Below are positions 7,295 to 60,342 of a stretch of DNA of 64,000 bases, one piece after another. The stretch comes from Octopus bimaculoides (lineage: Eukaryota). The DNA lies in contig NC_068983.1 in the NCBI RefSeq assembly GCF_001194135.2, positions 11,206,290-11,270,289 on the forward strand, given 5' to 3'. The notes beneath the pieces are model-generated. The model saw nothing but the letters and a program-made list of their open reading frames with translations. It was not told the origin of the DNA and did no database searches. Every line of letters begins with the position of its first letter. The stretch's first letter is position 1. Position numbers and translations under genes: made by a program.

Positions 7295-9935
7295 GCAAAA
7301 TAGAAATACTTGAGCAACAGGAAAAAAAAGTAGATCCAAATATTCATAGAATATTTGGGTGGAATGTTTTCTATTCTAGTTATTATTTTGCCTTTTCCCT
7401 GCCTAATATTATTCTTAGATACTTTACCTGATACATTCATAATGAAGTCTTTCTCTTTTTTTTTTTTTATTTGTTAACCTTTGATAGTTAACCTGTATTA
7501 CTGTGAAATATATTCAGAAGTAATTTTCATTGTTTTAGATTAGATTTTATCTTTTCTAATCTGTTCTGTTATTCTCAGTAATGTTTTCGCATAGGAGAAA
7601 AGAACTGGGGAATGAATTTAGCGAGCTTATAAAGTGGCAGTAGAATGGAACAAGTGTTGTTGTTGTTGTTGGCACTCCCGTCGCTTACGACGTTGAGGGT
7701 TTCAGTTGATCCGATCAACGGAACAGCCTGCTCGTGAAATTAACGTGCAAGTGGCTGAGCACTCCACAGACACGTGTACCCTTAACGTAGTTCTCGGGGA
7801 TATTCAGCGTGACACAGTGTGACAAGGCTGACCCTTTGAATTACAGGCACAACAGAAACAGAAAGTGAGAGTGAGAGAAAGTTGTGGTGAAAGAGTACAG
7901 CAGGGTTCACCACCATCCACTGCCGGAGCCACCTGGAGCTTTAGGTGTTTTCGCTCAATAAACACTCACAACGCCCGGTCTGGGAATCGAAACCGCGATC
8001 CTANNNNNNNNNNNNNNNNNNNNNNNNNNNNNNNNNNNNNNNNNNNNNNNNNNNNNNNNNNNNNNNNNNNNNNNNNNNNNNNNNNNNNNNNNNNNNNNNN
8101 NNNNNNNNNNNNNNNNNNNNNNNNNNNNNNNNNNNNNNNNNNNNNNNNNNNNNNNNNNNNNNNNNNNNNNNNNNNNNNNNNNNNNNNNNNNNNNNNNNNN
8201 NNNNNNNNNNNNNNNNNNNNNNNNNNNNNNNNNNNNNNNNNNNNNNNNNNNNNNNNNNNNNNNNNNNNNNNNNNNNNNNNNNNNNNNNNNNNNNNNNNNN
8301 NNNNNNNNNNNNNNNNNNNNNNNNNNNNNNNNNNNNNNNNNNNNNNNNNNNNNNNNNNNNNNNNNNNNNNNNNNNNNNNNNNNNNNNNNNNNNNNNNNNN
8401 NNNNNNNNNNNNNNNNNNNNNNNNNNNNNNNNNNNNNNNNNNNNNNNNNNNNNNNNNNNNNNNNNNNNNNNNNNNNNNNNNNNNNNNNNNNNNNNNNNNN
8501 NNNNNNNNNNNNNNNNNNNNNNNNNNNNNNNNNNNNNNNNNNNNNNNNNNNNNNNNNNNNNNNNNNNNNNNNNNNNNNNNNNNNNNNNNNNNNNNNNNNN
8601 NNNNNNNNNNNNNNNNNNNNNNNNNNNNNNNNNNNNNNNNNNNNNNNNNNNNNNNNNNNNNNNNNNNNNNNNNNNNNNNNNNNNNNNNNNNNNNNNNNNN
8701 NNNNNNNNNNNNNNNNNNNNNNNNNNNNNNNNNNNNNNNNNNNNNNNNNNNNNNNNNNNNNNNNNNNNNNNNNNNNNNNNNNNNNNNNNNNNNNNNNNNN
8801 NNNNNNNNNNNNNNNNNNNNNNNNNNNNNNNNNNNNNNNNNNNNNNNNNNNNNNNNNNNNNNNNNNNNNNNNNNNNNNNNNNNNNNNNNNNNNNNNNNNN
8901 NACTGATACCTTGTTTGAAGATCTGCTGGTCAATGTCTGCAGGAAAAACATGGACAAGGAATTAAATACCTGAAATAATATGAAACCTACTTAATCCATT
9001 TTCCTGTCCAAAGTATTTTCATAAGTTTGTCCTAAGTGTTCATGCTTGCGTTCAGAGTTTTAGTTAACCCTTGCTTCATATGTTCTGAGTAATATAAAGT
9101 GTTCATTTCATAAGTTCCAAGCTACTCCTGTGGTTGAAAAGATTAGAGATGTGTATCATATATGATGCTGTGTCTAAACAGCAATATAACTGTGTTCTAT
9201 ATTAATTCCTGCTTGATTGTAATTTATTATTGTCCAGCTCATGCCAGCATGGAAAATGGATGTTAAATGTTGATGATAATATTTTTTTTCTTTTTTTGCC
9301 ATTAACAGATTCATGATTATGTGTTATCTCCAACAAATGCTCGTTCAAGAATTAAAAGAAACACAAGTGAGTTGCCACTGACTTCAGCTAGCACACCACG
9401 GCTGAGTACAGATATCACTATCGAAGAACTTGCTGTGTCCCTTTCCAACATCCAATATAAATATCTTGTCTACTGGACTAGAGAACTTGACAAGCAGGAC
9501 AGACTTTACCGTTGTCTCAAATGGAGGCCAGATGTTAGTTGTGCCGAGAAGTAAGTATAAAGATTATATTTTTTTGTTAGATTTTCAATATTCGTTATGA
9601 TTTAAAATAAAAAAATTTTTTTAATACAAGTTAGTGGAGGGAACTGTGACTGACATATTCAACCCAGCACGAACATCTGTAAGAAAAGTATGAAGAGAAT
9701 AGTCAAGTTGGTACTCTTTTACTCTTTTACTTATTTCAGTCATTTGACTGTGGCCATGCAGGAGCACCGCCTTTAGTCGAGCAAATCGACCCCAGGACTT
9801 ATTCTTTGTAAGCCTAGTACTTATTCTATCGGTCTCTTTTGCCGAACCGCTAATTTAATGGGACGTAAACACACCAGCATCAGTTGTCAAGCGATGTTGG
9901 TGGGGACAAACACACAAACATATACACACACATGC

Positions 9936-9992
<57 letters not shown>

Positions 9993-12900
9993 CACACACG
10001 ACGGGCTTCTTTCAGTTTCCGTCTACCAAATCCACTCACAAGGTTTTGGTCGGCCTGAGGCTATAGTGGAAGACACTTGCCCAAGGTGCCACGCAGTGGG
10101 ACTGAACCAGGAACCATGTGGTTGGTAAGCAAGCTTGCAATAGATTCAACTCTACTAAAAGCACCCAAGGACCAAATTGTTAGTTCTAAGGTCAGATTTA
10201 AGAGGCAAATGGAGATAAGCTCTCTGTGTTTTTAGGTCTGCTTTGAGTGGGCTTGAGGAATATTTGAGCCAGTTTATTGCGGATAATGTTCAGTTTAAAT
10301 TGTCAGTCTGTTTACTTCCCCATTACTTAGTGGTTTGGCAAAAAAGACTGATAGAATGAAAACCAAACTTTAAAAAAAAAATAAGAAGTACTGGGGTACT
10401 ATTTGATTAAACTCTCAAAGGTGGTCCCCCAATATAGCTGCAGTCTGATGGCTGAAACATGCAGAAGATAAAAAATAGTGATTGGGCCAGAAAATTCAGA
10501 GAAGCAGAGGAAGTGGAAGATGAAAAGAATATATGACAGTGTCAATGAATCCCTTTTTTTTGTTTTTGTAAAATTTGTTAGGATTTGTTTGTTTTTATTT
10601 TATTAAAAAAAAACGTAATTTTTTTTTGCTTTTTTTCAGTCCAAGGCGCTGGTGGGACTATGCTATCACTGCTTATTTGTTCTTCATAAATGGTCGACAA
10701 CGTGACTTCTCGGTGAAAAGGTCTGTACAGAGAGCACGGGATTTGGTGGACTATTACAAAGCATATTGTGCATACTTGACACAGACTAACACAGCCACAA
10801 TGATAGTAAGTAGGGCTTCCTTGACACATTTGCACAATGATAAATCAAACATATAATTCATAATTCAATTTTCAAGAGAAGCCCATAATATTTTAAATGT
10901 ATTTTATTTGTTTTTTTTTAATCATGAATAAAGAAAATCTTATTTGTTTTTATGGAAGTGAGATCAATCATCATCATCATCATCATCATCGTTTAACATC
11001 TGTTTTCCATGCTAGCATGGGTTGAACAGTTCGACTGGGGTCTGGGAAGCCAGGAGGCTGCACCAGGCTCCAGTCTGATTGGCCAGTGTTTCTACAGCTG
11101 GATGCCGTTCCTAACACCAACCACTCCATGAGTGTAGTGGGTGCTTTTTACGTGCCACTAGCACAGGGGCCAGAGGAGGCTGGTAGCAGTCACGATCGGT
11201 TGGTGCTTTTTACGTGCCACCGGCAAGGGTATCACACCTACAATTTCCATAATTATCAGTATTATGAACTTTACTGTTTTCCCCTTAAATTTGACATATT
11301 CATCCATCAAAACTTGCTTCAGCTGTTGCTGCACTTATTTTCCCCGTAAGGCTCAGTTAACACAATTCCTTGGTCTGTGAAGTGGAACTTCTGGAGGTTA
11401 ATCTAACTACCCAATGATCAGGGAACTACCGCGAATATTTTTATTTTGCCTCTTATCGATTGGTATGCCAGTGTTAGCAAATGATGGACAGAATCAGTCT
11501 GTAGAACGTGGTCTTCAGATTAGTGTGTCAGTTCTACCACAAGAAAAAGCTGCTCATAATAGGCATTTCTAATGGTGATAATGCTTGGTGGCTAACATCA
11601 ACATGATACAGTGACTTGAGTATTTGAGGCATCCACCCAAACAGCCAGCCACTTGTGAACTGCTCTGATAACACTTTACACACTATATATGTAATTCTAA
11701 ATAGTGATATGCATTCTTGTTATTTTTCTAATCAGTGGGATGTTGTATTTATGTGTGTGCGTGCATGCTTGCTTGCTACTTCCAAAGTCAGAACAATTTT
11801 GGATGGGTACCATGTATCTGTATATTATCTTTATTCTGAACTGTTCTTTCTAAAAACCTAGGAATTGAAATTATTTCCAAGTTATTCAGTTTGCCTGTTT
11901 TTTTCGTTACAAATTGATTTTAGTTTTATAGATTTATTGACGTTTCTAACATTCAATATATAAAAGCTAATTTGGTGGATGATATTGACTTTACAAAGAA
12001 TGTAAGGGCCTCTATTCTCTCATACAGATGAATAAAGAATTAAATTTACATTTGAAGATTATATGCCAGTACAATATCTAACAATATAATAAGCATTATA
12101 ATGATTCATTTTCGCAATATTCATTCTTCTTACTCACAATCGTTTCAGCAACACCAAAAGAAAATGGAAGATGAGTTAAATATTGAAGAAATTAAAACCA
12201 TTCGGTTACTAGCATTTGACAAAGTTAACAAAGACATGAAGGAGGAAATTACCAAGGTAATGGAAAATATCAAGAATGTTTCTCTAACTGCAGTAATCAG
12301 CTAAAACTCTGTTCAGTTTTCAGTACTTGCTTTTGTTCAAAATGCCTTCCTTAATAATTAGGTTAATGAATTATCCATGTCATAATAATTCTTATTATTT
12401 TTAAATTTTGTTACAAGGGATATCAGTGAATCTCTTTTATTCAGTATACCATAATGCCCTTGTAACTAAGAATACCATTTCATGTCTCAGCTGCTCATTT
12501 TTCACTACATGAAACCACCCAGATAACGAGAAATGGCACTGGACTTATCTGTATTCAGCTCTTCTCTGACCGATAATTGTATCTGCTTTTCTCTCCAGAT
12601 GCCTACAGGAGAACGGTTGCATCAGATCTGTTCACACCCTATATTCTACCTTCACCCTTTTGGTCTCACCAGCCATCACACTCTATTTACCAGACCACTT
12701 GTTATTGTCATCTATCACTTTCTCCTATCCTCACCCATCCCTGTTATTTTCCATCACAATCTCAACTACATTCAGCAGCAAATATGGAGCTATAATCACT
12801 GTTTCTCTTCGATCACCTCTTCCTACTCTGTATCTCTCTTTATACTCCTGCTACCTTCATCTACCCTGGTTCATCATCTGTCATTGTTTTCTTGCCTCTT

Positions 12901-15009
12901 TATCTTCTGGATTGTCTTACCTTGAACAGACATGCTGTAAGGTCTTGAAGAATCTTTATCCTTGTAGGGCACAAGGTAACATTACTGGTGCTAATGCCAC
13001 ACTGAAATACAGCCAGTGTACACTTTGTAATATGGATGGTGGTCAAACAAAGATAATGTAGGATCAAGAGGACTTTTTAGTCAGGTTGAGGACAGGACAA
13101 TCTCTCTAGTGTTAGTGCTATAATAAAATGTATCCAGTACACTCTGTACAGTGGTTAGTATTAGGAAAAACATTCAACTGTACAGACTTTGCTAAAAATG
13201 GAATGCACAAGTGAGATGTCGTCTTCCGATCCATCTAGAAGAGCAGTAACTCCAAATAAGAATTGACTCAGAATGTGATGTGCTGTCCAACTCGTGCCTG
13301 TATAGAAAGCAGACATAAAATGGATAATGACAATAACATAGAGTTAAGACTCGTTATTGCATATAACTTAATCTGTTATCATATATGAATGTTTTTACAT
13401 TTGATATTTTTTTTTATATTTATTTTCGCCTCTCTTTTAGCCAAGTACTCCTGTAACACAAACACCTGAAGAATATAAAACAGGTTACCTCCAAAGTTGG
13501 CTGTCATGGGCTGTTGGTTATTCAGAACCCTTGTCTCCTGATTGTTTAAGCAGTGAAATTGAAACTTCTGCTGAAGAATCCTTCGAGGATAGAGAAAATT
13601 TAGGTAATATTTTCTTTGAATCCTATTTATTTCTGACTGTATATTTCAAAAATCCATTTGTTTTTTTGATTAACAATTCGTTAATGGTCCTGTTTAGCCA
13701 GCCTCTTGTTTACTGTGTAATTAAGAAGTTTGCTTCCCAACTACATGCTTTCAGGTTCAGTCCCACTACATGCCACCTTGGGCCATATTGTCTCCTGCAA
13801 TAGTCCTGGTTGGTCAAAGCTTTTTAGCGGAGACCAAAAGAGACCCATTTCATGTGAGCGAGTGTGTTTCTTTGTCTTGGCCATGGGGGAAATATTACCT
13901 TGCTTAGAAACAGGTAGGTGATGGTGACAGGTGGGGAATTCAGCTGTAGAAAATCTGCATCCATAAACTTCATCTGACCCATGAAAGCATAGATCATAGA
14001 AAAGTGGAAATTATAACAATGTTGATTCCTTCAGATAAATCATCATTCCTTAACAGATCCACTTATGTAAATTGACTGGCAGCAAATATTAATTTCCCAC
14101 TGCTCTGCTTATGGTATGTGAAGATTATTTTGATCATGAGCTGAATGCCCTAACCACTAAGCCATGCGCCTTCACTTACCAATGTTACTTTATTGTTAAA
14201 ATCACTTTTGCTCTTGCCCACCATCATTGGGCATTGGAAATACCAGGAAATTCTGAATCATTCAAATTCATGTAATTATCAGATGTGACCATTTGGTTGA
14301 AAAGTTTGCTTCTCAATCATGTGGTCCCAGGTTCAGTCTTGCAGTGCAACCCATTGCGCAGGTGTTTTCTACTATAGTCCTAGGTTGACTAAAACCTTGT
14401 GAGTGGATTTAGCAGACAGATACTGAAAAAAGCTGGTTGTGTATATATATATGTGTGTGTGTGTGTGTGTGCATAAGTGTGTAGTTTATGTGTACTCTTG
14501 TCTTGACATCATGATGGTTGTAAACAAGCATCATCATCATCATCATCATACAAGCGATGCTGTTCATGTTCAGTCTTCTTTGAAAATATGTCTGGCCATG
14601 GGAAATATTACCTTGTTTGGAATCGGGCTATGGTTGGTGACAGGAAGGGCATCTAACCATAGAAAAATCTGCTTCAACATGTTCTGTCTGCAAACCTGGA
14701 AAGGTGGATGTTAGATGGTGATGATGATTATGTTAATATCAACTGTATTATAGGTGTCAATCGTAACTCTATAACCCAAATATATTTTATTTTCACAGAG
14801 CGAGAATTGATGGACATTGTGAACAAATCTATGGACAGCGATACATTTTACAAACGAGACAAAGTGTTTGCTACATTAAACTTTTGCTTAAAGAAAGGGT
14901 CAATGAAGCTGCTCACAAGTACTGAAAAAGGTTTGTTTTTGACAAAAAAATTACTTCTGTTCTAGCATTTAGATTGATTCAGTTAAAAATTTTACTAACA
15001 AAGTAGAAC

Positions 15010-15076
<67 letters not shown>

Positions 15077-17883
15077 ATTTTCTTATTATTGTCATACTTC
15101 TTTGTTACAGACAGCACTATTCGGGAGATGCTGGTTGCAGAGTGCAATGATATCAACATTAATGTTGAAGCGCGGCCTCAAGTTGGTGCTTACAAATTTT
15201 GCCTAAGCTTAGGAATTTTTGAGCTGCAAGACAGACTTATTAAAGAATCTTGTTTCCCAAGTCTTATTGTTCCAAATCCAAAGGTAAAGTCTTGACTTAA
15301 ACGTAATTATTCTTGTCTCTATTAAACATTTTACTCCAATAGTTATTAACTGTACTCATGTGAATTGTTGTGTTTGCTTTACATGTTTAAAATAATAATG
15401 TAATTTTTATATTGTAATACTAATAATTTATAGAAATGACCAAACAGCCCCTCAGTTTTTGAGTCTGAATCCACAGCAGGCTTTGGTGTATTCAGACAAT
15501 ACTATTAATTTTATGCACTTTAGATTACTCGCATAATCAGTACTAAATTTATTAGGAATGTCATCAGTGGTAGACTGGTATCTTATCAAAAGAGAGGTTT
15601 AATTTATTTTTCCATTAAATATCATCAAATTGGATTCAAGTGCTGTTCCTCTTGAATTCTTCATGGTTTTGGTAATTTTTAACAGATAACTTTAGTTAAT
15701 AAAGCTGAAAAAGTTTTCTTAACTATTCAACCATACTTGGACCCATTAATGAACATACTGTAGTGCTGGTAACAATATGAGCCATAGGACTTTTGACAAG
15801 TTGTCCAACTGAAATACGCTGGTGCCATGTAAAAAGCATCTGTGCTGGTGCCACATAAAAAACCCCAGAATACGCTGAAAAGTGGTTGGTGTTAAGAAGG
15901 GCATCCAGCCATAGATACCATGCCAAAACGGACAATTGGAGCCAGCTGTAGCTCTCTGGCTTGTTATCTCCTCAAACCATTCAACCCATGCCAGCATGGA
16001 AAGCAGATGTTAAATGATGATGATGATAATGATTAAAGTATGCCGATAAACATGAACAAAATGACTGAGGGTTTTACATATTTGATTTTGAATTTCATTT
16101 CAGGAAATTTCATACACATTCCGTAGAATGCGTTTTGGTAAACCTCTTGCCAAAACTACAACAATCCAAGAAGTACCAGTGTCTGAATCAGGCGTTGATC
16201 CTTGTGAGAAAATATTTGAAGTGACTTTTGAGAAATCAGAGTCAAACAGTAATAAAAAGTACAAGTGAGTGGATTACATTTCTTTTGTGCCCATGGAAGT
16301 TCTTTTAATTAATATCTATGTAATCAAATGATTGGTTAAATATATTTGTAGAGTATTTTATGATCAATAGGTAATCAACCTCATTATCCCTCACTTCTGA
16401 ATGTGACAACGTGTTTCTAGTTAATCTTATGGTTGCATTTACAAGAAAAATTGAACTCAATACTGCAAGTTAATAAAACATCTGCCAATTTTACAATACA
16501 TATTTGAGTGAGGTTGTATAATGTATACAGCTACTCAACCTGCTGGAAATGTTAACCAAATCTCCATAAAATCACATCCTACCATCTTAAAAACCAAAAA
16601 GAAGAAAAAGGACACAGAGGACATTGTAGTTTCTGGTACAAAGTTTTCTTGGCTAAAACACATTTGATTGTAGCTCTGTTTATTCATGGTGTACCGGGAG
16701 ATAAACAACACCAGTATTTGTGTTTTCTCTGAAACAAAAAAAAACAAAAACAAGATGGTCACAGATAGAATGCCTTTGCTCATGGGTTTGCTTGGTCAGT
16801 GCTGAACTGGGTCTAACCAGCAACAATGACCATCATCATACTACTGATGTTCTTAGCAGTGTAACGTTACTACTCTACGGTGCTGGTTTGCAGCTTGGTC
16901 TCTAACTTGGACTAACAGTATAGTGACAGAAACAGAATATAAGGTGGCGAACTGGCAGAAACGTTAGCATGCCGGGCGAAATGCTGAGCAGTATTTCGTC
17001 TACCGTTACGTTCTGAGTTCAAATTCCGCCGAGGTCGACTTTGCCTTTCATCCTTTCGGGGTCGATAAATTAAGTACCAGTTACGCCCTGGGTTCGATGT
17101 AATCGACTTAATCCCTTTGTCTGTCCTTGTTTGTCCCCTCTATGTTTAGCTCCTTGTGGGCAATAAAGAAATAAGAAACAGAATATTACTTAAAAAAAAA
17201 AATGAAGTAAATATAATAATGTTATTGTGAAGATTGTTGTTCTCTTCGTGAATGTTTTTTTCTCTGTTTCCAGAATCTATGTGAAAACCAAATCAATAGC
17301 CATTGTCTGTAACCCTTATACAGTAAAAGANNNNNNNNNNNNNNNNNNNNNNNNNNNNNNNNNNNNNNNNNNNNNNNNNNNNNNNNNNNNNNNNNNNNNN
17401 NNNNNNNNNNNNNNNNNNNNNNNNNNNNNNNNNNNNNNNNNNNNNNNNNNNNNNNNNNNNNNNNNNNNNNNNNNNNNNNNNNNNNNNNNNNNNNNNNNNN
17501 NNNNNNNNNNNNNNNNNNNNNNNNNNNNNNNNNNNNNNNNNNNNNNNNNNNNNNNNNNNNNNNNNNNNNNNNNNNNNNNNNNNNNNNNNNNNNNNNNNNN
17601 NNNNNNNNNNNNNNNNNNNNNNNNNNNNNNNNNNNNNNNNNNNNNNNNNNNNNNNNNNNNNNNNNNNNNNNNNNNNNNNNNNNNNNNNNNNNNNNNNNNN
17701 NNNNNNNNNNNNNNNNNNNNNNNNNNNNNNNNNNNNNNNNNNNNNNNNNNNNNNNNNNNNNNNNNNNNNNNNNNNNNNNNNNNNNNNNNNNNNNNNNNNN
17801 NNNNNNNNNNNNNNNNNNNNNNNNNNNNNNNNNNNNNNNNNNNNNNNNNNNNNNNNNNNNNNNNNNNNNNNNNNNNNNNNNNN

Positions 17884-31200: not shown

Positions 31201-34200
31201 GTATTGATTAAGTTATTCACATCACAGAATTCCAGAATTTGTGATCCCTCCTCATGTCTCTCACCGTACTTGCTTCCATCTTGTACTCAAGAGAAGCCAT
31301 CATGGTGTTGCCCAATATGTTCTTTGAAATTACTAACTGTGCTAATGAAGTTGCCATCATTTCTTATCAAGATAATCTGCAGTATTGCAGGCCCTGCCAA
31401 AAAAATGCTATGGGCATACCCATCTTTCTTTACTGCACTACTCTTCCCCCACTAAAAGTACATATCTAGCAAACAAATTATATACACGAGAAAATCATTA
31501 GAGTGAGATCATTGCCAGTGCCGCTGGACTGGCTCCCGTGCAGGTGGCACATAAAAAACACCATTTTGAGTGTGGCCGTTGCCAGTACCGCCTGACTGGC
31601 CCTCGTGCCGGTGGCATGTAAAAGCACCCACTATACTCTCGGAGTGGTTGGCGTTAGGAAGGGCATCCAGCTGTAGANNNNNNNNNNACCCACTATACTC
31701 TCGGAGTGGTTGGCGTTAGGAAGGGCATCCAGCTGTAGAAACTCTGCCAGATCAGATTGGAGTCTGGTGCAGCCTTCTGGCTTGCCAGTCCTCAGTAAAA
31801 TCGTCCAACCCATGCTAGCATGGAAAGCGGACATTAAACGATGATGGTGATGATGATGACTATGTACTGCTCTTTTTATAATTGGTATTGGTTTTCTTTC
31901 TTTCTTCTTTCAACTTTTCTCTAATTTTATCAAAAGATTTTATTACATTTATTTGTTTATTTTTGACAGGAATTTCAGCACTAAAACTAGACTCTTCTAC
32001 TGAATCAGACATTGCCAAAGTGATTCGAACAGGGAGCAGTGAATCTTCTCAGTCATCAAAGCCAGTTCCAACTAGTCTCCCATTAGAAGCACGGTTTGAA
32101 GTGGCAATGTTCAGTGTGGAGATGCAAGGAGATTTGGAACCTGATTCACAAAAACGACTTGTTGACCTTTGCTTACAAGATCTCATCCTTATCTATCATC
32201 GAATGGACAATTATGTTTCCTCATTTGATCTTTCTCTTAAATCACTTACCATGGAAGATTTATTAGAGACAAATGACTCTAAACCTCGTTATTTAATGGT
32301 CTCATCTAAAAAGGAAGAACCAGAACCTAAAGAAGATAAATTAGGTTCTAATTTATCAACATCTTGTCCTGATTGTACAATAATGGTCCCTAAACCGAAA
32401 ATGCCTGGTTCTTTGCCTTCAAGTTTTCACGAAGAGAATGTTTTTATGTCTCATTCTAAGAAAAACAGCTTAGGAGGTAATCAGAGGAAAATGGCTGCAG
32501 AAGAAAACAAGTAAGTATTGTTTACCGTAGCTGTATCTTTGGTTTGTCACCATTTATATTCATTTCTTTCAGGAGATTACTAAACAAATCATATTGATAT
32601 ATTGATTGATATATAGAGACACAAGTGTGGCTGTGTGGTTCAATCCTACTCCATGGCACCTTGACCAGGTGTCTTCTATTATAACCCTGGGTTGACCAAA
32701 ACTTTGTGAGTGGATTTGGTAGATGGAAACTGAAAGAAGCCCATTGTGTTTGTGTATATATATGTTTGTGTTACTGTGTCCTTGCCTTGACATCATCATC
32801 ATTTAACGTCTGCTTTCCATGCTAGCATGGATTGGACGATTTGACTTGGGACTGGTGAACCAGATGGTTACACCAGATGGTTACACCAGACTCCAATCTG
32901 ATCTGGCAGAGTTTCTACAGCTGGATGCCCTTCCTAACGCCAACCACTCCGAGAGTGTAGTGGGTGCTTTTTACGTGCCACCAGCACGAGGGCCAGTCAG
33001 GCGGTACTGGCAACGGCCACACTCAAATGGTGTCTTTTTATGTGCCACCCGTACAGGAGTCAGTCCAATGTTTTGTTCACATGCCACCGGCACGAGTGCC
33101 AGTAAGGTGGAGCTGGAAACGATCATGCTTAAATGGTGCTTTTTATGTGCCACTGACACGGAAGCAAGACCGCTGCTCTGGCAGTGATCTCACTCGGTGC
33201 CAGTCATCGAATTTGGTTCAGTTTTCGATCACATGATGGTTGTAAATGAACATCACTGTCATACAAGTAGTGTCGTTCATTTGCAATATTCAGAAAAATG
33301 TCTAGCCAAAGAGAGCTACTGCCTTGCTTGGAAATAGATTGGGGTTGGTGAAAGAAATGGCATCTGGCCATAAGAAAAAATCCTCTTCAATAAACTCTTT
33401 CCAACCCTTGCAAGCATGGAAAAGTGGATGTTAACATGATAATAATGATGCTGAGTCATTTACTTCATGGTCTAAAGTTCTAACTTTCCACCTATATGAT
33501 GATATTTAACTGTTGCTAAAGTAACCACATCTAGAAACACTTCTGCATCAGGCCCATAAATGTGTTGTACCCTCTCTCTGTCTTTTCTACTACAGCGACC
33601 CCTTCTCTTCAGAGGTGGCCACTCTCATGCTGTCTCCACTCAGGTACTCTGAGTTCATGTGTCTCTTCTCTTTCTATCAGTCTTGTTGTGTTTACTTTGT
33701 CAAAGGTTCCTCACTAAACACTGTATCCATTCCTTTCATCATCATCATCATCGTTTAACGTCCGCTTTCCATGCTAGCATGGGTTGGACGATTTGACTGA
33801 GGACTGGTGAAACCGGATGGCTACACCAGGCTCCAATCTGATTTGGCAGAGTTTCTACAGCTGGATGCCCTTCCTAACGCCAACCACTCAGAGAGTGTAG
33901 TGGGTGCTTTTACGTGTCACCCGCACGAAGGCCAGTCAGGTGCTACTGGCAACGGCCACACTCAAAATGGTGTATTTTATGTGCCACCCGCACAAGAGCC
34001 AGTCCAGGGGCACTGGCAACGATCTCACTCAAAAATCCTACGAAGGCCAGTTAGGCGGTACTGGCTTTCTTCCCACTATATCCATTCCTTTGTCCCTTAG
34101 AAATTTCCTCCCTGTAGATATCTCTCCTGAAATTGCCTGCTTACTACAGTCTAAGTGAAACATTTAACAATATAAATCTCATTGTTTGGAAGAGCCTGCA

Positions 34201-45300: not shown

Positions 45301-48300
45301 GACTACTTGTATGTCTAGAAGTTTTAGTGGTGGTCGAATGCAGACATGAACAAGAGGAACTTGGGCACAGCATGACAGCTATTATTCTTCTGTATGTTTT
45401 TCTGATAATTAGCTACCCTTGTATCTGGCAGCTTGTAAGGTAATTGATATTGCAAATATCTTTGTGTGTATGTGTGTATGTATATATATATATATATATA
45501 TGTATAGATATATATATATGTGTGTATATATATATATATAACAAATGAAAGACAGAAGATGGAATATACAAGAATTTATTATTAATCATGATAATTGCTT
45601 CGACACATCTAGCATCGATTCCTCATGTGGGACACTCAACATCATGGCAAGCTGGCAAAATCATTAGCATGTTGGACAAAATATTTAGCTGCATTTCTTC
45701 CAGTTCTTTACATTCTGAGTTCAAATCCCACTGAGGTCAACTTTGCCTTTCATCCTTTCTGGGTCAATAACATAAGATACAAGTCAAGTACTTGGTTCCA
45801 CGTCATCAAAAGTTCTGGCCTTGAACTCTGCAATGGAACTGGCTTCCCATTTAGAGGGAATGTTGTGGTTTTGGTCTCTTATATGCCACGGAATTCAGGT
45901 AACCAGCCTTATGAGTCGTAGGGCTCAAGGAAAAGTAAATTATTGTTTTAGCTTGTTTTAGACTTTCTATTAAAATCTGGCCCCACCTCTTCTCTTCATT
46001 TCCTGTTGCTTTTTCTCCACTCACAAACACCAATATCAGTCTCTTTGTCCCTCATTTGTTTACTTTCTATAACTATTTCATCATACTGACCCTATAATGA
46101 TTGGACAGGTCAGTGTTATCAGAATGATTTTGTAGTTGCATTCTCGTACTTTGTTGATGTCCCTAGGTGTGATTTAATATGTAGCAGGAATTGTTTAGGC
46201 TAAAAGTTGCTGTAGAAATAGTTTATAATTCACATTGAAATATCACTCGGATATCTGAATATTAAATTGATGGGTTTTTTTGGGTTTTTTTAATCAGATA
46301 TGGATAAAAAGCCAGAGGAAAAATTTGAAACTGTGAAGGTCAGAAACCCCTCTGAAAGTTCCACACCTGTATTGAGGCCCCGCAGTCCTCTCAACAGATC
46401 TCAAGGAATAGTGACCAGACGATGTCATGTCGTTGAACAAGTAAGTATGCCTCTGTGTGTGTGTATTTTTTATTGTTTTAACTTCCCCTTTCGCATGGTT
46501 GGATAGAGTCTGTTACCAACTTTCACTTGTTTCCAAGCAAGGTAATATTTCCCCTTGACCAGACATATCTTCACAGAATACTGAAAATGAATCACACTGC
46601 TTGTGTGACACTCATTTACAACTATCACACAATGTTAAGACAAGGAGAGAGAGAGAGAGAGAGAGACACACACACATACACACACACAACGTAGATATAT
46701 ATATATATATATATATAATCATCATCATCATCATCATCATCGTTTAACGTCCGCTTTCCATGCTAGCATGGGTTGGACGATTTGACTGAGGACTGGTGGA
46801 GCCCGAAGGCTACACCAGGCTCCAATCTGATTTGGCAGATATATATATATATATGCATAATGAAATAACAGCCAACATTTGGCAGTTAGAAATATAGGGA
46901 GGGATAGAAAAAAGAGAAGAAAGAATTGCACAGAAAGAGGGGACAGGTGGAAAGAAGAAACCTTGAACTCTACAAAAAGAAGGGGTAATTATAGGGTCAG
47001 TATGATGAAATAGTTATAGAAAGTAAACAAATGAGGGACAAAGAGACTGATATTGGTGTTTGTGAGTGGAGAAAAAGCAACAGGAAATGAAGAGAAGAGG
47101 TGGGGCCAGATTTTAATAGAAAGTCGGAAAATGTAAGAAGTACATATAGTGGGAGGAAGAAAAGAAATAATGATGTGAGTGAGAATCATGAAGGGAAGTG
47201 AGTGGAGGTAGGAAGTGAGTGGAGGTAAGAAGTGAGTGGAGGTAAGAAAGATGACAAAATTGAACTCTAGAAGAAAATGGAGCAAGGCTTGAAGCAGAAA
47301 TAAAACCCATCAAAAAGCTAGTATGTATTTAGTATTAATTATTGTAATATGTAGGATGCTTATTATTATTATTATTAATGTATGATTGTAATTTGGAGTA
47401 AATGAGTTTATATAATACGTCTTAATTTTGTTGGATTAATGAGCCTGTATAGCAGTTCTTTTTTTCTTTTAACACTGACACTCTCTGTCTGTCTCTCTCC
47501 CTCTCTCTCTCTCCTCCCTCTTTTTTATGTAATTACACCTTCTATATCTGTTGATTTTGACTCAACTCATAGTATGTCTGTTTATGTTGATTTAACCAGC
47601 TCTGCTTAAACATTCAGTATCACTAACTTGCCCTTCTCCTGTTCACTGTACCCGTTGATTCACTTTTCCAGACTGAGGTACCATTTGAGCTAAAAGTCAA
47701 TGTCAGAAATACGCAGTTTGTAGTTGTTGCTGACATGTCTACATGGGACACGGAAGCAGCTATTCTGAAGGTAAATATCAATATTAATATTAGATGTTAC
47801 TTTCAAGACAAAAGTTTTAATTTATTAACAGGGAAAGGTCTGTGCTTTTAATATGTCTGTGTGATACAATATAAATCTGATTTTTATAATTTGATATCCT
47901 ATTGTGAAGTCGTTTATATTGGATGTGCCATCTTAGTTCCTCAGTAATGATATGTTTATGATCAATTAAATTCAAACTTATAGTGACCGTTCTTAAGTGA
48001 CCCTAGGAAAGGCACATTACTCTGCTTATTTCAATATACCTGGTGGTCATGTTTCCAATGGTCAGAAATTTGCAGAGCATCAAACTGAAGATAGGAACTC
48101 TAGTATGTAAATGTCCAAACATTCTTGCCTATGTTCACAGTGTGTACATGTGCTATATTTTGGTAATTATGTCATTAAATCCTTAACTTGATTTCACCCA
48201 AATATCTATTTTAGGATTATTAACCATGTAAATTATTCATATAAATTAGGTGGTGAGCTGGTAGAACTGTTAGTGTCGGACAAAATAAGTAGCAACATTT

Positions 48301-51300
48301 TTTCCAATTCATTATGTTCTAAGTTCAAATTCTGCTGGGGTCAGCTTTACCATTTCATCCCTTTGGGGTCAATAAAATTAAGTACCAATCATGTACTGGG
48401 GTTGATGTTGACATCAACTAACCCCTTTCCTCTAAAATCAAAGCCATTATTATCCATGTGGATTCTGCTGCAGAATTGGTGTATAAATTTAATGGTATTT
48501 ATACTTACTAAAATATATTTTAGGATCTACACATTTCTCTGTAAATGTTTGAACACTTCAATCCTGTGTGTGTTATTTTTAAAGATGCCATTGGTTTGTT
48601 AGTTTTCTTTAATGAAAAATAGAAAAATTACTTTCTGGGCTGCTAATATAATTTGTTTCTGCTTTTCAATAAAGCCCATTTTTAATGATTTGATATCTTT
48701 TCTTCAGGTGCCAAAACTGGCATTGAATTTACAAACCATTTTTACACACAATTCCCTTGTGTTATGGACAATTATTATAGATATATTGATTTAAGAGAGG
48801 ATCTTTATGGACAGTTGTTGCAGAGGGAGGGTCTAGGTGGATATTGACACATATTTGTACTATTTGTCAGTGACATAGTGAATAAAAAGAAAGAATTGGA
48901 ACCACCCTGTATGAAGTAAAGGTTTGTAAGTGCAATCACAGCTTCAGTACTTATTACTATACATGGTTATCAGATAGTGAACACAGATTATGCATTTCAT
49001 TGTGTTGTGTTTTATTAAACAAGAACAAAAACGAGAAAGAAATGTTCAGTCAACTGTCCAGTGAGATTCTCTATCACGTTACTATCTCTGAAAATATATG
49101 TATAAAAGTTTTCTTTATTGCTTGTTCGTTTGTCTCTCTATCTACAGTGTACTGCTGTGCTACGGTATCGTCCGAAAGCGCAAGACTTACCACTGTCATG
49201 CAGTTTGCAGAGCCTAGAAGTATTTTCCTGTTTCCTAATGGAAGAAGAGGAAACTGCCCTTTCAATTATTGATCCAACCAGCATTACCATAGAAATTAAT
49301 GCCAACCCATTGCCAGATCGCTCAACTTCACGTGTTACTGGCTTGCTAGATGCTCAAGCAGTGGAAAATCCTCTAGTTCTTGAAGTAAGTTGATTACAAT
49401 TATCGTTACCATTGGACAGTAATTAGAGTTTTTTGGCACAATTTGTAGAGTGTCAGATGAAATGATTTTCGTATTCTAACATATGTTTTGAATTTAAGTC
49501 TTGCTACAGTCAACTTTGCCTTTCATCCTTCTTGGGGCTTAATATGATAACAATTAAGGTCTGATATAATCAACATGTGTCAGACATATGAAGCTCAAGG
49601 TGGTTGTTGGCACGATGGTTAATAATTTAACCTTAAGACATCATTAACAGAGTCTAAATGGATTGGATCTCTGGTCTAGAGATAACGTCCTTTCTCACCA
49701 CCAGTCTTGGAGGTTCTTGAAAGGGCCATAGAGACTGTCTTTCCTTTTCTAAGTCATAAAATATGCATATACATAGCATGAAAATTCATGCTGAAATTCT
49801 CTTTATATTTGTTCCTTGTGCTGCATTTATCTGATTTTCTTATATGGTCGTGTTTGTTTCTTTTATTTTACAGATGACACTCAATCTTTTAAACATTCGT
49901 TTGTCTTACAATGACTTAAAGATGTTTATTGCCATCACTGACTCTTTACCTGAACAAGCTACAAAGGCTAGAACTGCCCAGAACATCCATTTTAAAAGCA
50001 CAGGTCTGTTGATACACATTACTCTAATTCCTAATCACTATTTATCTTAATCTCAGTAACCCAAATGTCATTTATTTTCCTTTTTTATTTTTTTCAGCTC
50101 CAGCTGTACAGGAAGTTGAAATATTACCTCTTGGAGAGAGCTCAGTTGATGCAATGCCTAGCCTAAATTACTCTTCTGCCAGGAGCAGTTTTAGTGAACA
50201 AAGTAGTTATCAAACTCAATATACATCATCTCGAAGAGCTTCCAATATTGAACAAGATTCTTGGTTTTTAACGGGTATTGAGGTAAAAACAAAAATAACA
50301 ATTTATACACGTTTATTTCAGAGTTTATCAAAAGCACAATTTATCAAATTCTAGTCTCAGTTTTTCTCAAGAAACTATGTTCTCTTATGATCTCTTAGAA
50401 TGTCCATTTTTCCATACTAGCATACTAGCATGGACAGGAATTTATTCTGGAGCAGGATTTAATAACTAGATGCCCTTTCTTTCACCAACCCTCACCTGTT
50501 TTTAACAGAGTTTATATAAAATATACTCTTTTACTTGTTTCAGTCATTCTATCTATCTCTCTGTCTCTCTATCTCTGACATTGGAAATTTGTAACTTTGT
50601 TTTCTTGATTTTGATGCTAAATTTTTTATTCCATTCTAGATAAAAGCCTCATCAATTTGTATTTGTCTCATTGATGATTGTAAAGATGCTGATGTACCAC
50701 TTGCAGAAATTTCATTCAACTGTAAGTTACCCAGCTTCTTGTCAAATATCTTAAAATGTCATTTTAATTTTTTCTTTTTTTTGCCTTTTTTTTTATAAAT
50801 TTTTATTTCTTACCACTGATCATCTAACTAATATTTGGTTTTGCAATATTTCAGATCTAGAACTTCACCAACAGCTCCTCCCCAAGAAAGTGGGTCGAGG
50901 TATGTTCAAATTACTTGGAGACTATTACAACCGCAAACTGTCTGGTTGGGAACCATTTATTGAAGTTTGGAAGTAAGTTAAAAAACAAAAAGGGAAAGTT
51001 GTCTTGTAAATTTTTTCAACTCTTTCAATCAAGCAAAGTATGCAGGGTGTGAGAGTACTAATTAGTTTTTATCTGGACGTAGCAAGAACAATGAAATCAG
51101 AAGTAACATTTAGGTAAATGCCCTAGTTTAAAGTCCTAAGTACCAGTAGAGCACTAGGGCCGATGTAACTGACTTAACTACTCTTGGGTAAGAGTCTAAA
51201 AATGGCATTCCTCTGTCAAGCCATGTTAAGCCAGTATGGCAGAATAGGCTCATCAAACCAGTATGATCTCAAGCTCAAATTCATGGCCTCCACATCAGAC

Positions 51301-54300: not shown

Positions 54301-57300
54301 TTTTAAGGGGTGGTGTTAGTCAATTATATTGACCCCAGTAAATGATTGATACTTTATTTTATCAATCTCAAAAGAATGAAAGGTAAGGTTGACTATGGCA
54401 GTATTTGAACTTGGAACATAAACAACTGGAAGAAATGCTACTAAGCACTTTGTCCAGCACATCGATTATTCTGCCTACTTGCTGCCTTCATACACACAAA
54501 TTCGAAGACCCGGCAAGCCAAGTGAGACCATAATCCAAGGCCTCTGCCAGGGGTGTAGCCAGCCCACTTATGCATACCTTTTCTTCATTGGACACTCACT
54601 GTCTGAGCATGACCGTTGCCAGAGCAGCAGCCTGGCTTCCGTGCCAGTGGCATGTAAATAGCACCATTTGAAGTGATCGCTACCAGCGTTGCCTTACTGG
54701 CACTTGTGCCGGTGGCACGTGAAAAAACATTCGAGCGAGGTCGTTGCCAGTGCTGCTGGACTGGCTCCTGTGTAGGTGGCACGTGAAAAGACACCATTTT
54801 GAGCGTGGCAGTTGCCAGTACTGCTTGACTGGCCCTCGTACCGGTGACACATTATGCTATCGGAGTGGTTGGCGTTAGGAAGGGCATCCAGCTGTAGAAA
54901 CTCTGCCAGATCAGATTGGAGCCTGGTGCAGCCATCTGGTTCGCCAGTNNNNNNNNNNTTGGAGCCTGGTGCAGCCATCTGGTTCGCCAGTCCTCAGTTA
55001 AATCGTCCAACCCATGCTAGCATGGAAGGCAGACATTAAACGATGATGATATATATATATATATCAGGCACGTGCTATCAGTAATTACTCAGGCTAGGCA
55101 GTTGGTGACACTTATGTAGTAAAACATACTAAAAATAAGCGAAACACAGCCGCATGACAGAGTTGAAGGTAGATTTACATCTGCCTTTACAGCACATAAA
55201 GAAAACGTTGTTGTAGGAATGTATGCAGCACATGTGCTGCAGCAGTACTATGCTTAGCTTAGATACTGAGATTGAAAGGCTTGGGCGAATTATGCCTACC
55301 TAATCTAGAACAAAAAAAATATTTTGCATTTTATGCATAGTAATCAAAGTAACCTTCAAGATTTTACTGAATTAGGTGCATATTTTACCATAAAAGGAAA
55401 ATGTTGCTATCGATCTATTTTATTCAAGGTAGGTACTGCCTACTTTGCTTAATTAGGCGGCATGTCCCTGATATATATATTGAAAGAGAGAGAGAGAGAG
55501 AATGTGTATGTAGGTGTATGTTAAGGGCACACATTACAGAATTATCACCCACATACATGCTGACTGAATGAGTAAATAGTTTAGGTGATCAAACATCTAG
55601 AATATCCATTGTCAAGACCTATATATATATATTCACACACACACACACACACCTTCTTTCCCAGTGATTGAATTTCAATGGAATGCATTTGGTTGCATTG
55701 CAGAAACACCAGCAAGGATTCATCAACAAAGTTATCTCAAACAGTCGCCAAGAAATTTGGTCTACAAAAACGTATTCCATTTGTGCCTTTTGTCATACGA
55801 AATCACACAGGACTGCCATTCCATTTTTTGACTGTAACCACCACCCCTGCCTGGTAAGTTGACTGTATACCAATACCTATATGTACATAAATGTCTTTCG
55901 CTTGAATTCAAACCTGTTGCAATAGAAAACTTTATTCCACATGCCACATTTGTTCATATAATTGTACTTGATATATATTCGACCATGTTTATTTAGAGCC
56001 GTAAATAAATGTAATTTATGTTTTACAATCAAATTAATCAAACAGTACGTTTGCATTTGTTGAAGGAATGTCTTTATGAATTCTTTTTTGCAAAAAAGGG
56101 TTTAACTGTTTTTGTTCTCATTCACGATAGGATTAAGATCAGATACAGTAAAATCATGCATAAAATGAAATATATTCATTGAAGTTGCTTGTGCATATTA
56201 CAGACAACATAAGGCAGCCATTACCTGGTTGTTCATGTAGAAGAAAAGAGAAAGAAATCAAGCACATAACTGTGTTCTTAGAATGCTACCTGTGTTTAGA
56301 GTTCAATGTTGTATGTGTCCACTTTTTCCCATAAAAAGTTTTGTTGTTACTTTTGAGAACTTCAGCAAAAGTAATGCTATTACCTTTAACATTACCAATA
56401 ATTGTTGCTGAACTTTCCTCAACTCACATTCTGTATTAGCAAGAATAATCTTGTATCATCATTTAACATTCATTTTTCATGCTGGCATAGGCTGGACAGC
56501 TTGATAAGCCAGAGAGCTGCTCCAGGCTCCGATTGTCTGTTTTGAAAAAGGTTTCTACAGCTGGATGCCCTTCCTAATGCCAACTGCATGCTTTTACCAT
56601 GACACCAGCATGAATACTTTTTATGTATGTTTGTAATTAAATATCAGAAAATCACACATTTATGCTAAAAATGCTTTACTGAAGTCAAGGGCAGCACCAA
56701 TTTTCCATTTTTATTTTGTATTTTATGAAGGTAAAAGGCTATTTCCCTGTAGAATTACTGGTTCTACTGTGGATGCAAGCAGGTTATAAATTCAGAATCC
56801 TGAAGCAGAAATTTGGATTGATTAATTCTCAATGGGCTCATAATTTCTGCAACACATTCTACTCGTATTTGTGAGATGATGCTGTGATTGCACAGACAAA
56901 CATCCTCAACCAAATCCAAAAGAACATCATATGAATGATTGACAAAGATTCAGCTGTCAACATGCTTCAACCACTCACTTGTATACATGCTGTTTTTTCT
57001 CATTGTCTCTTCTATTACTGCTACAATGATTTATCCTTTTCTGAAGTACCTAATAATATACCCTCTCCACCAAGGCCTGTCTTTTCTCATCCTGCCACCT
57101 GTTCTTTATCTCTTGTTCTATGGTCCACAGTAAAAACTTTATTTAATTTTCCTTCCGAGAACTACATCTATAATTTCATACCTGCCCATGTTTTTCCATC
57201 TGATAATTATTTGAATAAGAAGGTTTGCAAAAATCAAGGATCTGCCCGTCTTTCCTTGACATTTTATGAAGAAAAAAAAAAAATACAAAATTAAACATTT

Positions 57301-58167: not shown

Positions 58168-60342
58168 CTAGCAGGTCACACACAACTACTTTGAATGTCT
58201 GGCCAAACAAATATATTTTACTACTGTAAGCATTAGTAGTTTTGCCTTTGATCTGTTCAGGCTCAATAAAATAAAGCACTAGTTAAGTACTAGGGTCAGT
58301 ATAATCAGTAATCTTCAAGCCTAGGCGCAGGAGTGGCTGTGTGGTAAGTAGCTTGCTTACCAACCACATGGTTCTGGGTTCAGGCCCACTGCATGACACC
58401 TTGGGCAAGTGTCTTCTACTATAGCCACGGGCCGACCAAAGCCTTGTGAGTGGATTTGGTAGACGGAAACTGAAAGAAGCCCGTCTTATATATATATGTA
58501 TGCGTGCGTGTGTGTGTGTGTGTGTGTGTTTATCCCCCCAACATCGCTTGACAACCGATGCTGGTGTGTTTACATCCCCGTAACTTAGCAGTTCGGCAAA
58601 AGAGACCGATAGAATAAGTACTAGGCTTCCAAAGAATAAGTCTTAGGGTCGATTTGCTCGACTAAAGGCAGTGCTCCAGCATGGCCGCAGTCAAATGACT
58701 GAAACAAGTAAAAGAGTAAAAGAGACTATGTTACAAACAATTATTATACAAATATAGGCATTACAGTATGTGTTAAAATTCTATGTTCTTGTAACAAAGG
58801 TTTTTCTTTACCTGTTTTCCAGGAAACTCATGAACTTCGTGTCAATCAACTTGTGGTCAAAGCTGATGACTGGCAGAAACTTTCTGCTGTGACCGTAGAT
58901 AAAGTTGGAATCTACTTCCGTGATGCTCAACCCGATGAGAAAGTGATCCGCACGCAGGTATCTTTTGAACCCATTTCCGGCGGCGTGCTGAACTATACTG
59001 CCAGATACCGTTCGGGTGATTGTAATCTTACCAGGGATGGGGATTCTCTTCCACATGAGGTATCTTGGTGTTAGTGCTATGTTCTCATACTAAAGAATGC
59101 CTGGCTTGCATAATACTTCCCCCTATTNNNNNNNNNNNNNNNNNNNNNNNNNNNNNNNNNNNNNNNNNNNNNNNNNNNNNNNNNNNNNNNNNNNNNNNNN
59201 NNNNNNNNNNNNNNNNNNNNNNNNNNNNNNNNNNNNNNNNNNNNNNNNNNNNNNNNNNNNNNNNNNNNNNNNNNNNNNNNNNNNNNNNNNNNNNNNNNNN
59301 NNNNNNNNNNNNNNNNNNNNNNNNNNNNNNNNNNNNNNNNNNNNNNNNNNNNNNNNNNNNNNNNNNNNNNNNNNNNNNNNNNNNNNNNNNNNNNNNNNNN
59401 NNNNNNNNNNNNNNNNNNNNNNNNNNNNNNNNNNNNNNNNNNNNNNNNNNNNNNNNNNNNNNNNNNNNNNNNNNNNNNNNNNNNNNNNNNNNNNNNNNNN
59501 NNNNNNNNNNNNNNNNNNNNNNNNNNNNNNNNNNNNNNNNNNNNNNNNNNNNNNNNNNNNNNNNNNNNNNNNNNNNNNNNNNNNNNNNNNNNNNNNNNNN
59601 NNNNNNNNNNNNNNNNNNNNNNNNNNNNNNNNNNNNNNNNNNNNNNNNNNNNNNNNNNNNNNNNNNNNNNNNNNNNNNNNNNNNNNNNNNNNNNNNNNNN
59701 NNNNNNNNNNNNNNNNNNNNNNNNNNNNNNNNNNNNNNNNNNNNNNNNNNNNNNNNNNNNNNNNNNNNNNNNNNNNNNNNNNNNNNNNNNNNNNNNNNNN
59801 NNNNNNNNNNNNNNNNNNNNNNNNNNNNNNNNNNNNNNNNNNNNNNNNNNNNNNNNNNNNNNNNNNNNNNNNNNNNNNNNNNNNNNNNNNNNNNNNNNNN
59901 NNNNNNNNNNNNNNNNNNTATGTATGTATGTATGTGTATATGTTTGTGTGTCTGTGTTTGTCTCCCCCAACATCGCTTGACAACCAATGCTGGTGTGTTT
60001 ACGTCCCCGTAACTTAGCGGTTCGGCAAAAGAGACCGATAGAATAAGTACTAGGCATCCAAAGAATAAGTCCTGGGGTCGATTTGCTCGACTAAAGGCGG
60101 TGCTCCAGCATGGCTGCAGTCAAATGACTGAAACAAGTATAAGAGTAAAAGAGTAATCCTGGTTAATTTTTCCTTTTCCTTTTTAGTACTTTTTATTTAA
60201 TTATTGTTTATGTTGAATTTGTTTTATTTTTGTTAAATATTTGTTAATAGTGCCTTGTTTTTTTTGTTCTTATCTCAGTCGTATTAGGGAGAGTAATGAT
60301 ATTGTATATCTACCATGGTATACGAAGAACATGTATGCATGG

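Follow-up and report, generated by a model that had tools for sequence, protein, structure and literature searches.

VPS13D is a bridge-like lipid-transfer protein, and in other animals one exon encodes its UBA domain, a three-helix module of ~40 aa. This domain is the feature usually cited for VPS13D, and it ties the protein to ubiquitin-dependent mitochondrial clearance. The loop that carries the UBA is the RBG12/13 loop, which is located between two repeats of the β-groove (Levine 2022, PMC7613979). Homozygous ΔUBA Drosophila have been used as viable mutants, in which mitochondria are enlarged and uncleared and mitophagy is defective (PMC8406608); since these flies are viable, the UBA would be modulatory rather than essential, and its repeated loss during evolution is therefore plausible. 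VPS13D proteins without a UBA have been described in nematodes, including C. elegans (C25H3.11/vps-13D) (Levine 2022, PMC7613979; PMC10345909), and in these proteins RBG3 and one RBG5-6-7 set have also been lost (Levine 2022, PMC7613979). In the literature collection searched, no paper mentions both VPS13D and octopus.

The locus described here lies in a 64-kb stretch of Octopus bimaculoides DNA (hereafter, the window), for which an initial annotation, made from the sequence alone, had proposed a VPS13D orthologue that has undergone a lineage-specific loss of the UBA. Taken as a whole, the evidence is best explained, with a probability of about 0.8, by a VPS13D orthologue whose UBA exon has been eroded in place to a disordered linker. 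What the present analysis adds to the proposal is that the former UBA exon is still in place, probably as an eroded linker exon, and that comparable losses are known, or can readily be found, in other invertebrates.

Identity and exon structure of the octopus gene

By its sequence, the gene in the window is of the VPS13D type and represents most of a canonical VPS13D orthologue on the + strand. Approximately 28 exons, distributed over 9.3–63.7 kb of the window on this strand, match collinearly the VPS13D gene of a related invertebrate sequence, L001 (Logan SRR23372228), without stops over 54 kb, and the only piece of the L001 gene that has no counterpart in the window is its UBA exon. The spliced peptide of the region matched a sole Pfam family, VPS13_M, with a score of 83 bits (cut-off, 50), and the best matches in protein searches using the spliced 251-aa peptide as the query were named VPS13D proteins (Halyomorpha, JGI, Bulinus, Pleurodeles, and Ptychodera). 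The motifs NIRLSY.D..MF, S.P.QA, IE.K....C.IDDC.D.DVPL, and YYNR.LSGWEP are kept in both the window and canonical VPS13D; in addition, the NANPLP loop motif is common to the window, Bulinus, Lymnaea, and a second related sequence, L007 (ENA ERZ21930238, a 604-kb contig). Over the 334 alignment columns common to all taxa, identity to the window was 57.5% for L007, 55.7% for the hemichordate Ptychodera, 54.8% for Lymnaea stagnalis, and 46.1% for an oyster “VPS13D-like” paralogue (XP_078319654.1, P0296), and the window clustered with L007 and Lymnaea in a neighbour-joining tree, both comparisons being made among VPS13D and VPS13D-like sequences. The assignment as a VPS13D orthologue made in the initial annotation is therefore upheld by the VPS13_M match, by collinearity, and by the closest relatives, which are UBA-bearing VPS13D genes of molluscs. 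A UBA in the loop was not found, and its absence does not exclude the gene from the VPS13D group because published work counts UBA-less orthologues as VPS13D.

On the + strand at 49.1–51.0 kb, the sequence shows five short exons bounded by canonical ag and gt (Table 1), the splice junctions being placed according to GT/AG sites, frame, and homology. Exon A carries NIRLSYNDLKMF and SLPEQA, the motif located directly upstream of the UBA in other species, and its C-terminal end is ..SLPEQATKARTAQNIHFKST; the phase-1 end is also found in the orthologues of exon A in L007, L001, and a third related sequence, L015 (ENA ERZ25069853). The intron that follows must be spliced, since stops interrupt its frame and 94 nt cannot be divided by 3. 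Exons A, B, and C are joined into ..SLPEQA-(72 aa)-TGIE-IKASSICICLIDDC..., and exon C shares 86% identity with L015, 78% with L007, and 74% with L001.

Table 1. Exons and introns around the UBA slot of the octopus VPS13D gene (positions in the window)
Feature	Position	Strand	Length	Boundaries and phase	Encoded peptide and remarks
Upstream VPS13D exon	49148..49384	+		5′ boundary and phase approximate	..CTAVLRYRPKAQDLPLSCSLQSLEVFSCFLMEEEETALSIIDPTSITIEINANPLPDRSTSRVTGLLDAQAVENPLVLE; 65% identical to L007; inside the VPS13_M match
Exon A	49874..50003	+	130 nt	ag and gt; phase-1 end	MTLNLLNIRLSYNDLKMFIAITDSLPEQATKARTAQNIHFKST
First intron	50004..50097	+	94 nt	GT..AG; conserved phase-1 position	Directly before the UBA exon of other species
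Exon B	50098..50282	+	185 nt		APAVQEVEILPLGESSVDAMPSLNYSSARSSFSEQSSYQTQYTSSRRASNIEQDSWFLTGIE; 62-aa Ser-rich peptide, predicted unstructured
Second intron	50283..50639	+	357 nt	Conserved phase-0 position	Between ..GIE and IKAS..
Exon C	50640..50721	+			IKASSICICLIDDCKDADVPLAEISFN; conserved β-strand segment directly downstream of the UBA loop
Exon D	50855..50972	+			..LELHQQLLPKKVGRGMFKLLGDYYNRKLSGWEPFIEVW; invariant YYNR.LSGWEP motif

This reading of splice sites and frames agrees with most of what had been stated about the interval. Both flanking motifs, SLPEQA and TGIE-IKASSICICLIDDC, are present as annotated, and the segment between them, described as ~70 Ser/Thr/Gln-rich residues without a UBA, is 72 aa long, of which 36% are S/T/Q (15 Ser, 5 Thr, and 6 Gln), and matches no UBA family in Pfam. 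The absence of a nearby assembly gap is likewise borne out, as no N runs occur between 31687 and 54949 and all N runs of the window are far from 49–51 kb. The statement that the only intron in the interval is one of 94 nt is correct strictly between the two motifs, but 49874–50721 holds a second intron of 357 nt, which splits TGIE from IKA.

Search for a UBA domain and origin of exon B

In at least 15 homologues, the UBA (..LGF..DC.KAL....G.LD.AALWLTQNA) is positioned exactly between the two flanking motifs; these homologues were obtained from the protein search with the spliced 251-aa peptide, a profile search, and a HMMER search run exhaustively over 1.84 billion representatives. The flanking motifs given for the human protein are matched in an amphibian sequence, XP_069096842.1 (..SIPEQT.. 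and ..ISGVDVKAEGICICIIDDC..). The UBA is kept in the gastropods Bulinus truncatus (KAH9492089.1) and Lymnaea stagnalis (CAL1546810.1), the latter of which is listed as a “UBA domain-containing protein” in UniRef, and in the near relatives L007, L015, and L001. The orthologous exon of L007 scored 33.9 bits for UBA_7 and 22.7 bits for UBA, above the cut-off, and that of L001 scored 20.5 bits for UBA in Pfam.

Exon B of the octopus gene, as judged by profile and predicted fold with working positive controls, contains no detectable UBA. No UBA family (PF00627/PF22562 clan) was matched at E ≤ 10 by the spliced peptide in Pfam, and none at the same threshold by 49385–50860 in three forward frames, introns included. 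Against a custom HMM derived from 12 UBA segments of VPS13D proteins, exon B reached −0.3 bits, and scores as high were obtained for 148 of 2000 composition-preserving shuffles. Across the six reading frames of the whole 64 kb, which hold 2722 open frames, the best hit of this HMM had an E-value of 1.4. This six-frame scan applies to the VPS13D-type UBA profile, the generic Pfam models having been run on 49385–50860 only. In a leave-one-out control, the UBA exon of L007 was recovered with 56 bits (E = 1e-16). Neither the HMM scan nor Pfam identified a UBA-like frame in the 357-nt intron.

When folded with AlphaFold2 in single-sequence mode, which may miss genuine folds, exon B yielded zero secondary-structure (DSSP) elements, with a mean pLDDT of 61 and a pTM of 0.13. 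A control UBA segment of equal size, from P0007, yielded three helices in the same mode (residues 12–17, 23–33, and 37–48; core pLDDT, 87–89; pTM, 0.48), and almost all of the best Foldseek matches of this fold in the PDB were UBA domains. The sequence hallmarks of the UBA were also missing from exon B, in which LGE is found instead of LGF and SSYQTQ takes the place of AALWLTQ. The two outcomes that the initial annotation had set against its claim of absence, a profile match and a three-helix bundle, were thus both looked for, and neither was found. Two kinds of remnant were considered and rejected: residual UBA homology in exon B, suggested by a MAFFT alignment of LPLGES with LGFS, because the HMM score is within the shuffle range, and a frameshifted UBA relic, because the six-frame scan was empty in exon B and elsewhere.

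The exon itself, in contrast to the domain, can be followed across species by its position. In L007 and L001, a single exon of 170 and 194 nt, respectively, encodes the UBA, with a phase-1 intron on its upstream side and a phase-0 intron on its downstream side; in the alignment, both introns coincide in position with those of the window. The UBA exon ends in ..IE in L007 and in ..YE in L001, and exon B has the same ..IE end, read as ..ATTGAG followed by gt. In L015, the phase-1 upstream intron is common with the window, but the phase-0 intron is absent and the UBA is fused to exon C. Because its slot and the phases (1 and 0) of the introns on either side agree with theirs, exon B is orthologous by position to the UBA exons of L007 and L001. 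The lengths of exon B and of the L007 and L001 exons are all 2 mod 3, and skipping of the exon would therefore shift the frame, so that the UBA exon appears to be still present and obligatory in octopus. With exon position and phase as the link, and no significant sequence similarity left, we infer that the UBA was eroded in place and that the exon was neither deleted nor excised; its sequence would have diverged until no UBA was left and would now encode a serine-rich, predicted-disordered spacer. Canonical VPS13D, as known from human and Drosophila, is represented here by Pleurodeles (XP_069096842.1), Teleopsis (XP_037935876.1), Ptychodera (XP_070561460.1), Lymnaea (CAL1546810.1), and Bulinus (KAH9492089.1). 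The octopus gene resembles these in VPS13_M, the flanking motifs, and collinearity, and shares the introns around the UBA slot with L007 and L001, whereas the three-helix UBA of the inter-repeat loop is replaced by the 62-aa Ser-rich, predicted-disordered segment.

The same UBA-less exon is kept in a genomic contig of a close relative, L005 (Logan SRR11869391), which is 89% identical to the window overall. Exon A is 99.2% identical between the two, with zero non-synonymous changes, whereas in exon B, where identity is 94.1%, 6 non-synonymous and 5 synonymous changes occur but no indel, frameshift, or stop; the flanking introns are 73–91% identical (83% for the 94-nt intron). The dN/dS of exon B between the window and L005 is 0.31, a marginal departure from neutrality (binomial P = 0.068). 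These values fit an exon that is maintained as coding sequence under weak residue constraint, as would suit a spacer or linker.

Alternative explanations and the role of the linker

The UBA might have escaped notice at this locus in one of two ways. A UBA exon could have been missed because it is hidden in an intron, belongs to an alternative isoform, or was lost through an assembly error. The 357-nt intron has room for an exon of 120–170 nt, and isoform X2 of Halyomorpha (P0008) indicates that isoforms or gene models with a partial UBA exist. However, no UBA-like frame is present in 49385–50860 according to Pfam, or in the 64 kb according to an HMM that found L007 at E = 1e-16; the 94-nt intron is too short, a replacement for exon B must be 2 mod 3 or the frame shifts, 31687–54949 is N-free, and the independent assembly of the related species, L005, has the same arrangement, which leaves a missed exon very unlikely. 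Just as implausible is the idea that exon B has kept a fold and ubiquitin binding, either as a UBA diverged beyond recognition or as another element that binds ubiquitin. MAFFT does set LPLGESSVDAMPSL opposite L..LGFS.EDC.KAL, and the two segments are alike in length (about 41 vs 39 aa), but the similarity is within chance, as the score of −0.3 bits is reached by 7% of shuffles. At the hydrophobic core positions (the F of LGF and A-A-L-W-L in helix 3), the 35% Ser/Thr/Gln peptide of exon B carries Ser, Gln, or Tyr, and AlphaFold2 predicted no helix for it while the control folded.

Other explanations concern the status of the gene. One is that the species still has a UBA-bearing VPS13D, with the present locus being a paralogue that lacks the UBA or with the UBA now sitting in a part of the gene beyond the window. 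A divergent mollusc paralogue does exist, namely the Crassostrea virginica “VPS13D-like” protein XP_078319654.1 (P0296, 1778 aa), which is without exon A and the UBA; some algal VPS13 proteins have a C-terminal UBA (PMC7613979), and the view taken here spans 64 kb of the genome. Nonetheless, this alternative is considered unlikely, as the window gene falls with the canonical mollusc genes that bear a UBA (57.5% identity to L007 and 54.8% to Lymnaea) and not with the P0296 type (46.1%), and shares its exon structure with the former; the protein searches and metagenome scan, in which cephalopod sampling is thin, contained no octopus-like UBA-bearing fragment. The least probable of the alternatives is a decaying pseudogene in which the UBA was lost as part of a general degeneration: although the weak constraint on exon B (dN/dS 0.31, P = 0.07) could be taken in its favor, the ~28 collinear exons are stop-free over 54 kb, the reading frame and intron phases are intact, exon A has zero non-synonymous changes relative to L005, and exons are better conserved than introns.

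If the UBA exon was indeed eroded in place, the octopus protein would, by analogy with nematode VPS13D, still be a lipid-transfer bridge, without ubiquitin binding via the UBA module. Since the conserved β-strand segments on both sides are intact, the lipid-transfer groove should still form, and the linker would be kept mainly for its length and frame. The RRAS motif in the Ser-rich linker is conserved in the window and L005, and the linker may contain phospho-sites, of which this motif is an example. A more far-reaching version, which we consider rather unlikely, is that exon B has been kept by selection as a new regulatory module, such as a phospho-regulated disordered linker with the conserved RRAS site in its Ser-rich tract, taking the place of ubiquitin in the control of VPS13D at octopod mitochondria. 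If that were true, the UBA slot of VPS13D would be a regulatory hotspot recurrently rewired across invertebrates.

Lineage and recurrence of UBA loss

The nearest relatives examined, namely the two gastropods, L007, L015, and L001, keep the UBA, and the sequences support a real lineage-specific loss, as proposed in the initial annotation, with the UBA-less exon seen in the window and one close relative (L005). Since Bulinus and Lymnaea keep the UBA, the loss is neither pan-molluscan nor pan-lophotrochozoan. No squid, cuttlefish, or Nautilus sequences turned up in the protein searches or in a metagenome scan for peptide patterns specific to octopus, in which cephalopod sampling is thin, and these yielded one close relative only (P0001/L005); the P0016 contig stops short of the exons concerned.

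Of the ~66 representatives that span the UBA site, 46 scored at least 22 bits against the UBA HMM and ~20 scored at most 0.5 bits. The UBA-less set comprises about 12 nematode-type proteins (P0010, P0012, P0047, and others), the Lepidoptera Leptosia nina (CAK1552704.1) and Chilo suppressalis (RVE44645.1), with P0011 and P0251 also of this type, the bdelloid rotifer Didymodactylos carnosus (CAF0969742.1), the monogenean flatworm Cichlidogyrus casuarinus (KAL3318449.1), and two further lineages. On the basis of these scores, loss of the UBA from VPS13D is recurrent across invertebrates and the octopus case is fairly ordinary. The premise that the UBA distinguishes VPS13D is therefore weakened by this recurrent loss.

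Nematode VPS13D resembles the octopus gene in being an orthologue without a UBA that has a non-UBA linker at the same site, but its linker is shorter (about 25–40 aa) and it has lost RBG repeats, whereas the octopus loop keeps a UBA-like length in a preserved exon; the two losses are independent, since gastropods keep the UBA. The proteins of Lepidoptera, the rotifer, and the monogenean are also comparable, having the same flanking motifs, a non-UBA linker, and at most 0.5 bits on the UBA HMM, although these clades are unrelated to octopus and the likeness is one of protein sequence. Taken together with the octopus, the nematodes, Lepidoptera, rotifer, and flatworm show that, over evolutionary time, several invertebrate lineages can dispense with the UBA. 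The octopus loss points to no new mechanism, but indicates that in-place erosion of an otherwise preserved exon is a possible route of loss, and a natural UBA-null VPS13D would be useful for separating lipid-transfer from ubiquitin-binding functions. A half-decayed UBA was also observed, in P0009/L024, in which helix 2 (EEECVKAL) is kept but neither the LGF loop nor helix 3 survives, and no Pfam match is obtained.

UBA-less VPS13D proteins in other invertebrates

Protein database searches recovered lepidopteran VPS13D proteins without the UBA domain (P0247, P0254, P0251 and P0011), a set comprising Leptosia nina CAK1552704.1, Chilo suppressalis RVE44645.1 and two relatives (P0251 and P0011), in which the lead-in to the domain is reduced to a short PANS[VI]HM remnant and nothing else is left. 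The domain is also missing from the canonical site in VPS13D-type proteins of the bdelloid rotifer Didymodactylos carnosus (P0270/P0347), the monogenean flatworm Cichlidogyrus casuarinus (P0320) and two further lineages (P0252 and P0276).

A half-decayed UBA was identified in P0009, encoded at genomic locus L024, where helix 2 (EEECVKAL) is retained, the LGF loop and the AALWL helix are gone, and the segment gives no Pfam match; the domain is intact in its relative P0062. Neither the NIRLSY exon nor the UBA is present in the short (1778 aa) "VPS13D-like" protein of the oyster Crassostrea virginica (P0296, XP_078319654.1), which shows only ~46–52% identity to the canonical mollusc genes; this protein is either a paralogue that has diverged or the product of a gene model that is incomplete.

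The UBA slot in Octopus and in a close relative

None of the five N runs (assembly gaps) within the VPS13D gene of the window lies close to the UBA slot, and VPS13D exons could be absent from the window at these five runs. The 94-nt intron between exons A and B of the window contains stops and shifts the frame, whereas its counterpart in L005, a contig from a close relative, is ~90 nt long, in frame and free of stops, and was therefore translated through by a prokaryote-style gene caller, as seen in P0001. The Ser-rich linker includes RRAS, a PKA-type consensus, which is kept in L005.

Features of the VPS13D loci
Sequence	Feature	Position
Window	N run	8004-8901
Window	N run	17331-17883
Window	N run	31678-31687
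Window	Segment matching SPLNMSSGVMTKRGPIVEQVGI	46351-46449
Window	Ser-rich linker with RRAS	50098-50282
Window	N run	54949-54958
Window	N run	59128-59918
L005	Region encoding P0001	340-789
L024	Region encoding P0009 (half-decayed UBA)	103-681
L015	113-bp tandem array	8249-9438
L007	Exon-like tandem segment	7577-8247
L007	Intronic repeat copies (examples)	11443-11571, 13104-13283, 13988-14176

Repeats in related loci with an intact UBA

On the upstream side of VPS13D exon A, locus L015 carries an adjoining tandem array of 10.5 copies (98% matches), every copy of which comprises an acceptor site together with the start of exon A, ~17 codons in length (NTLNVRLSYNDLMLFLG); the complete exon A is reached from the final copy only. 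An exon-like segment (SPLNMSSGVMTKRGPIVEQVGI) occurs in ~5 tandem copies in locus L007, as against one matching segment in the window. The introns of L007 also hold multiple copies of a repeat, presumably of a type present in bivalve genomes, with ORFs reading ..FNATFNNISVISWRS.. and ..WFSPGT.VSSTN.TD.HDI.EILLKV.LNTINQ.., for which a protein search returned 547 metagenome homologues.
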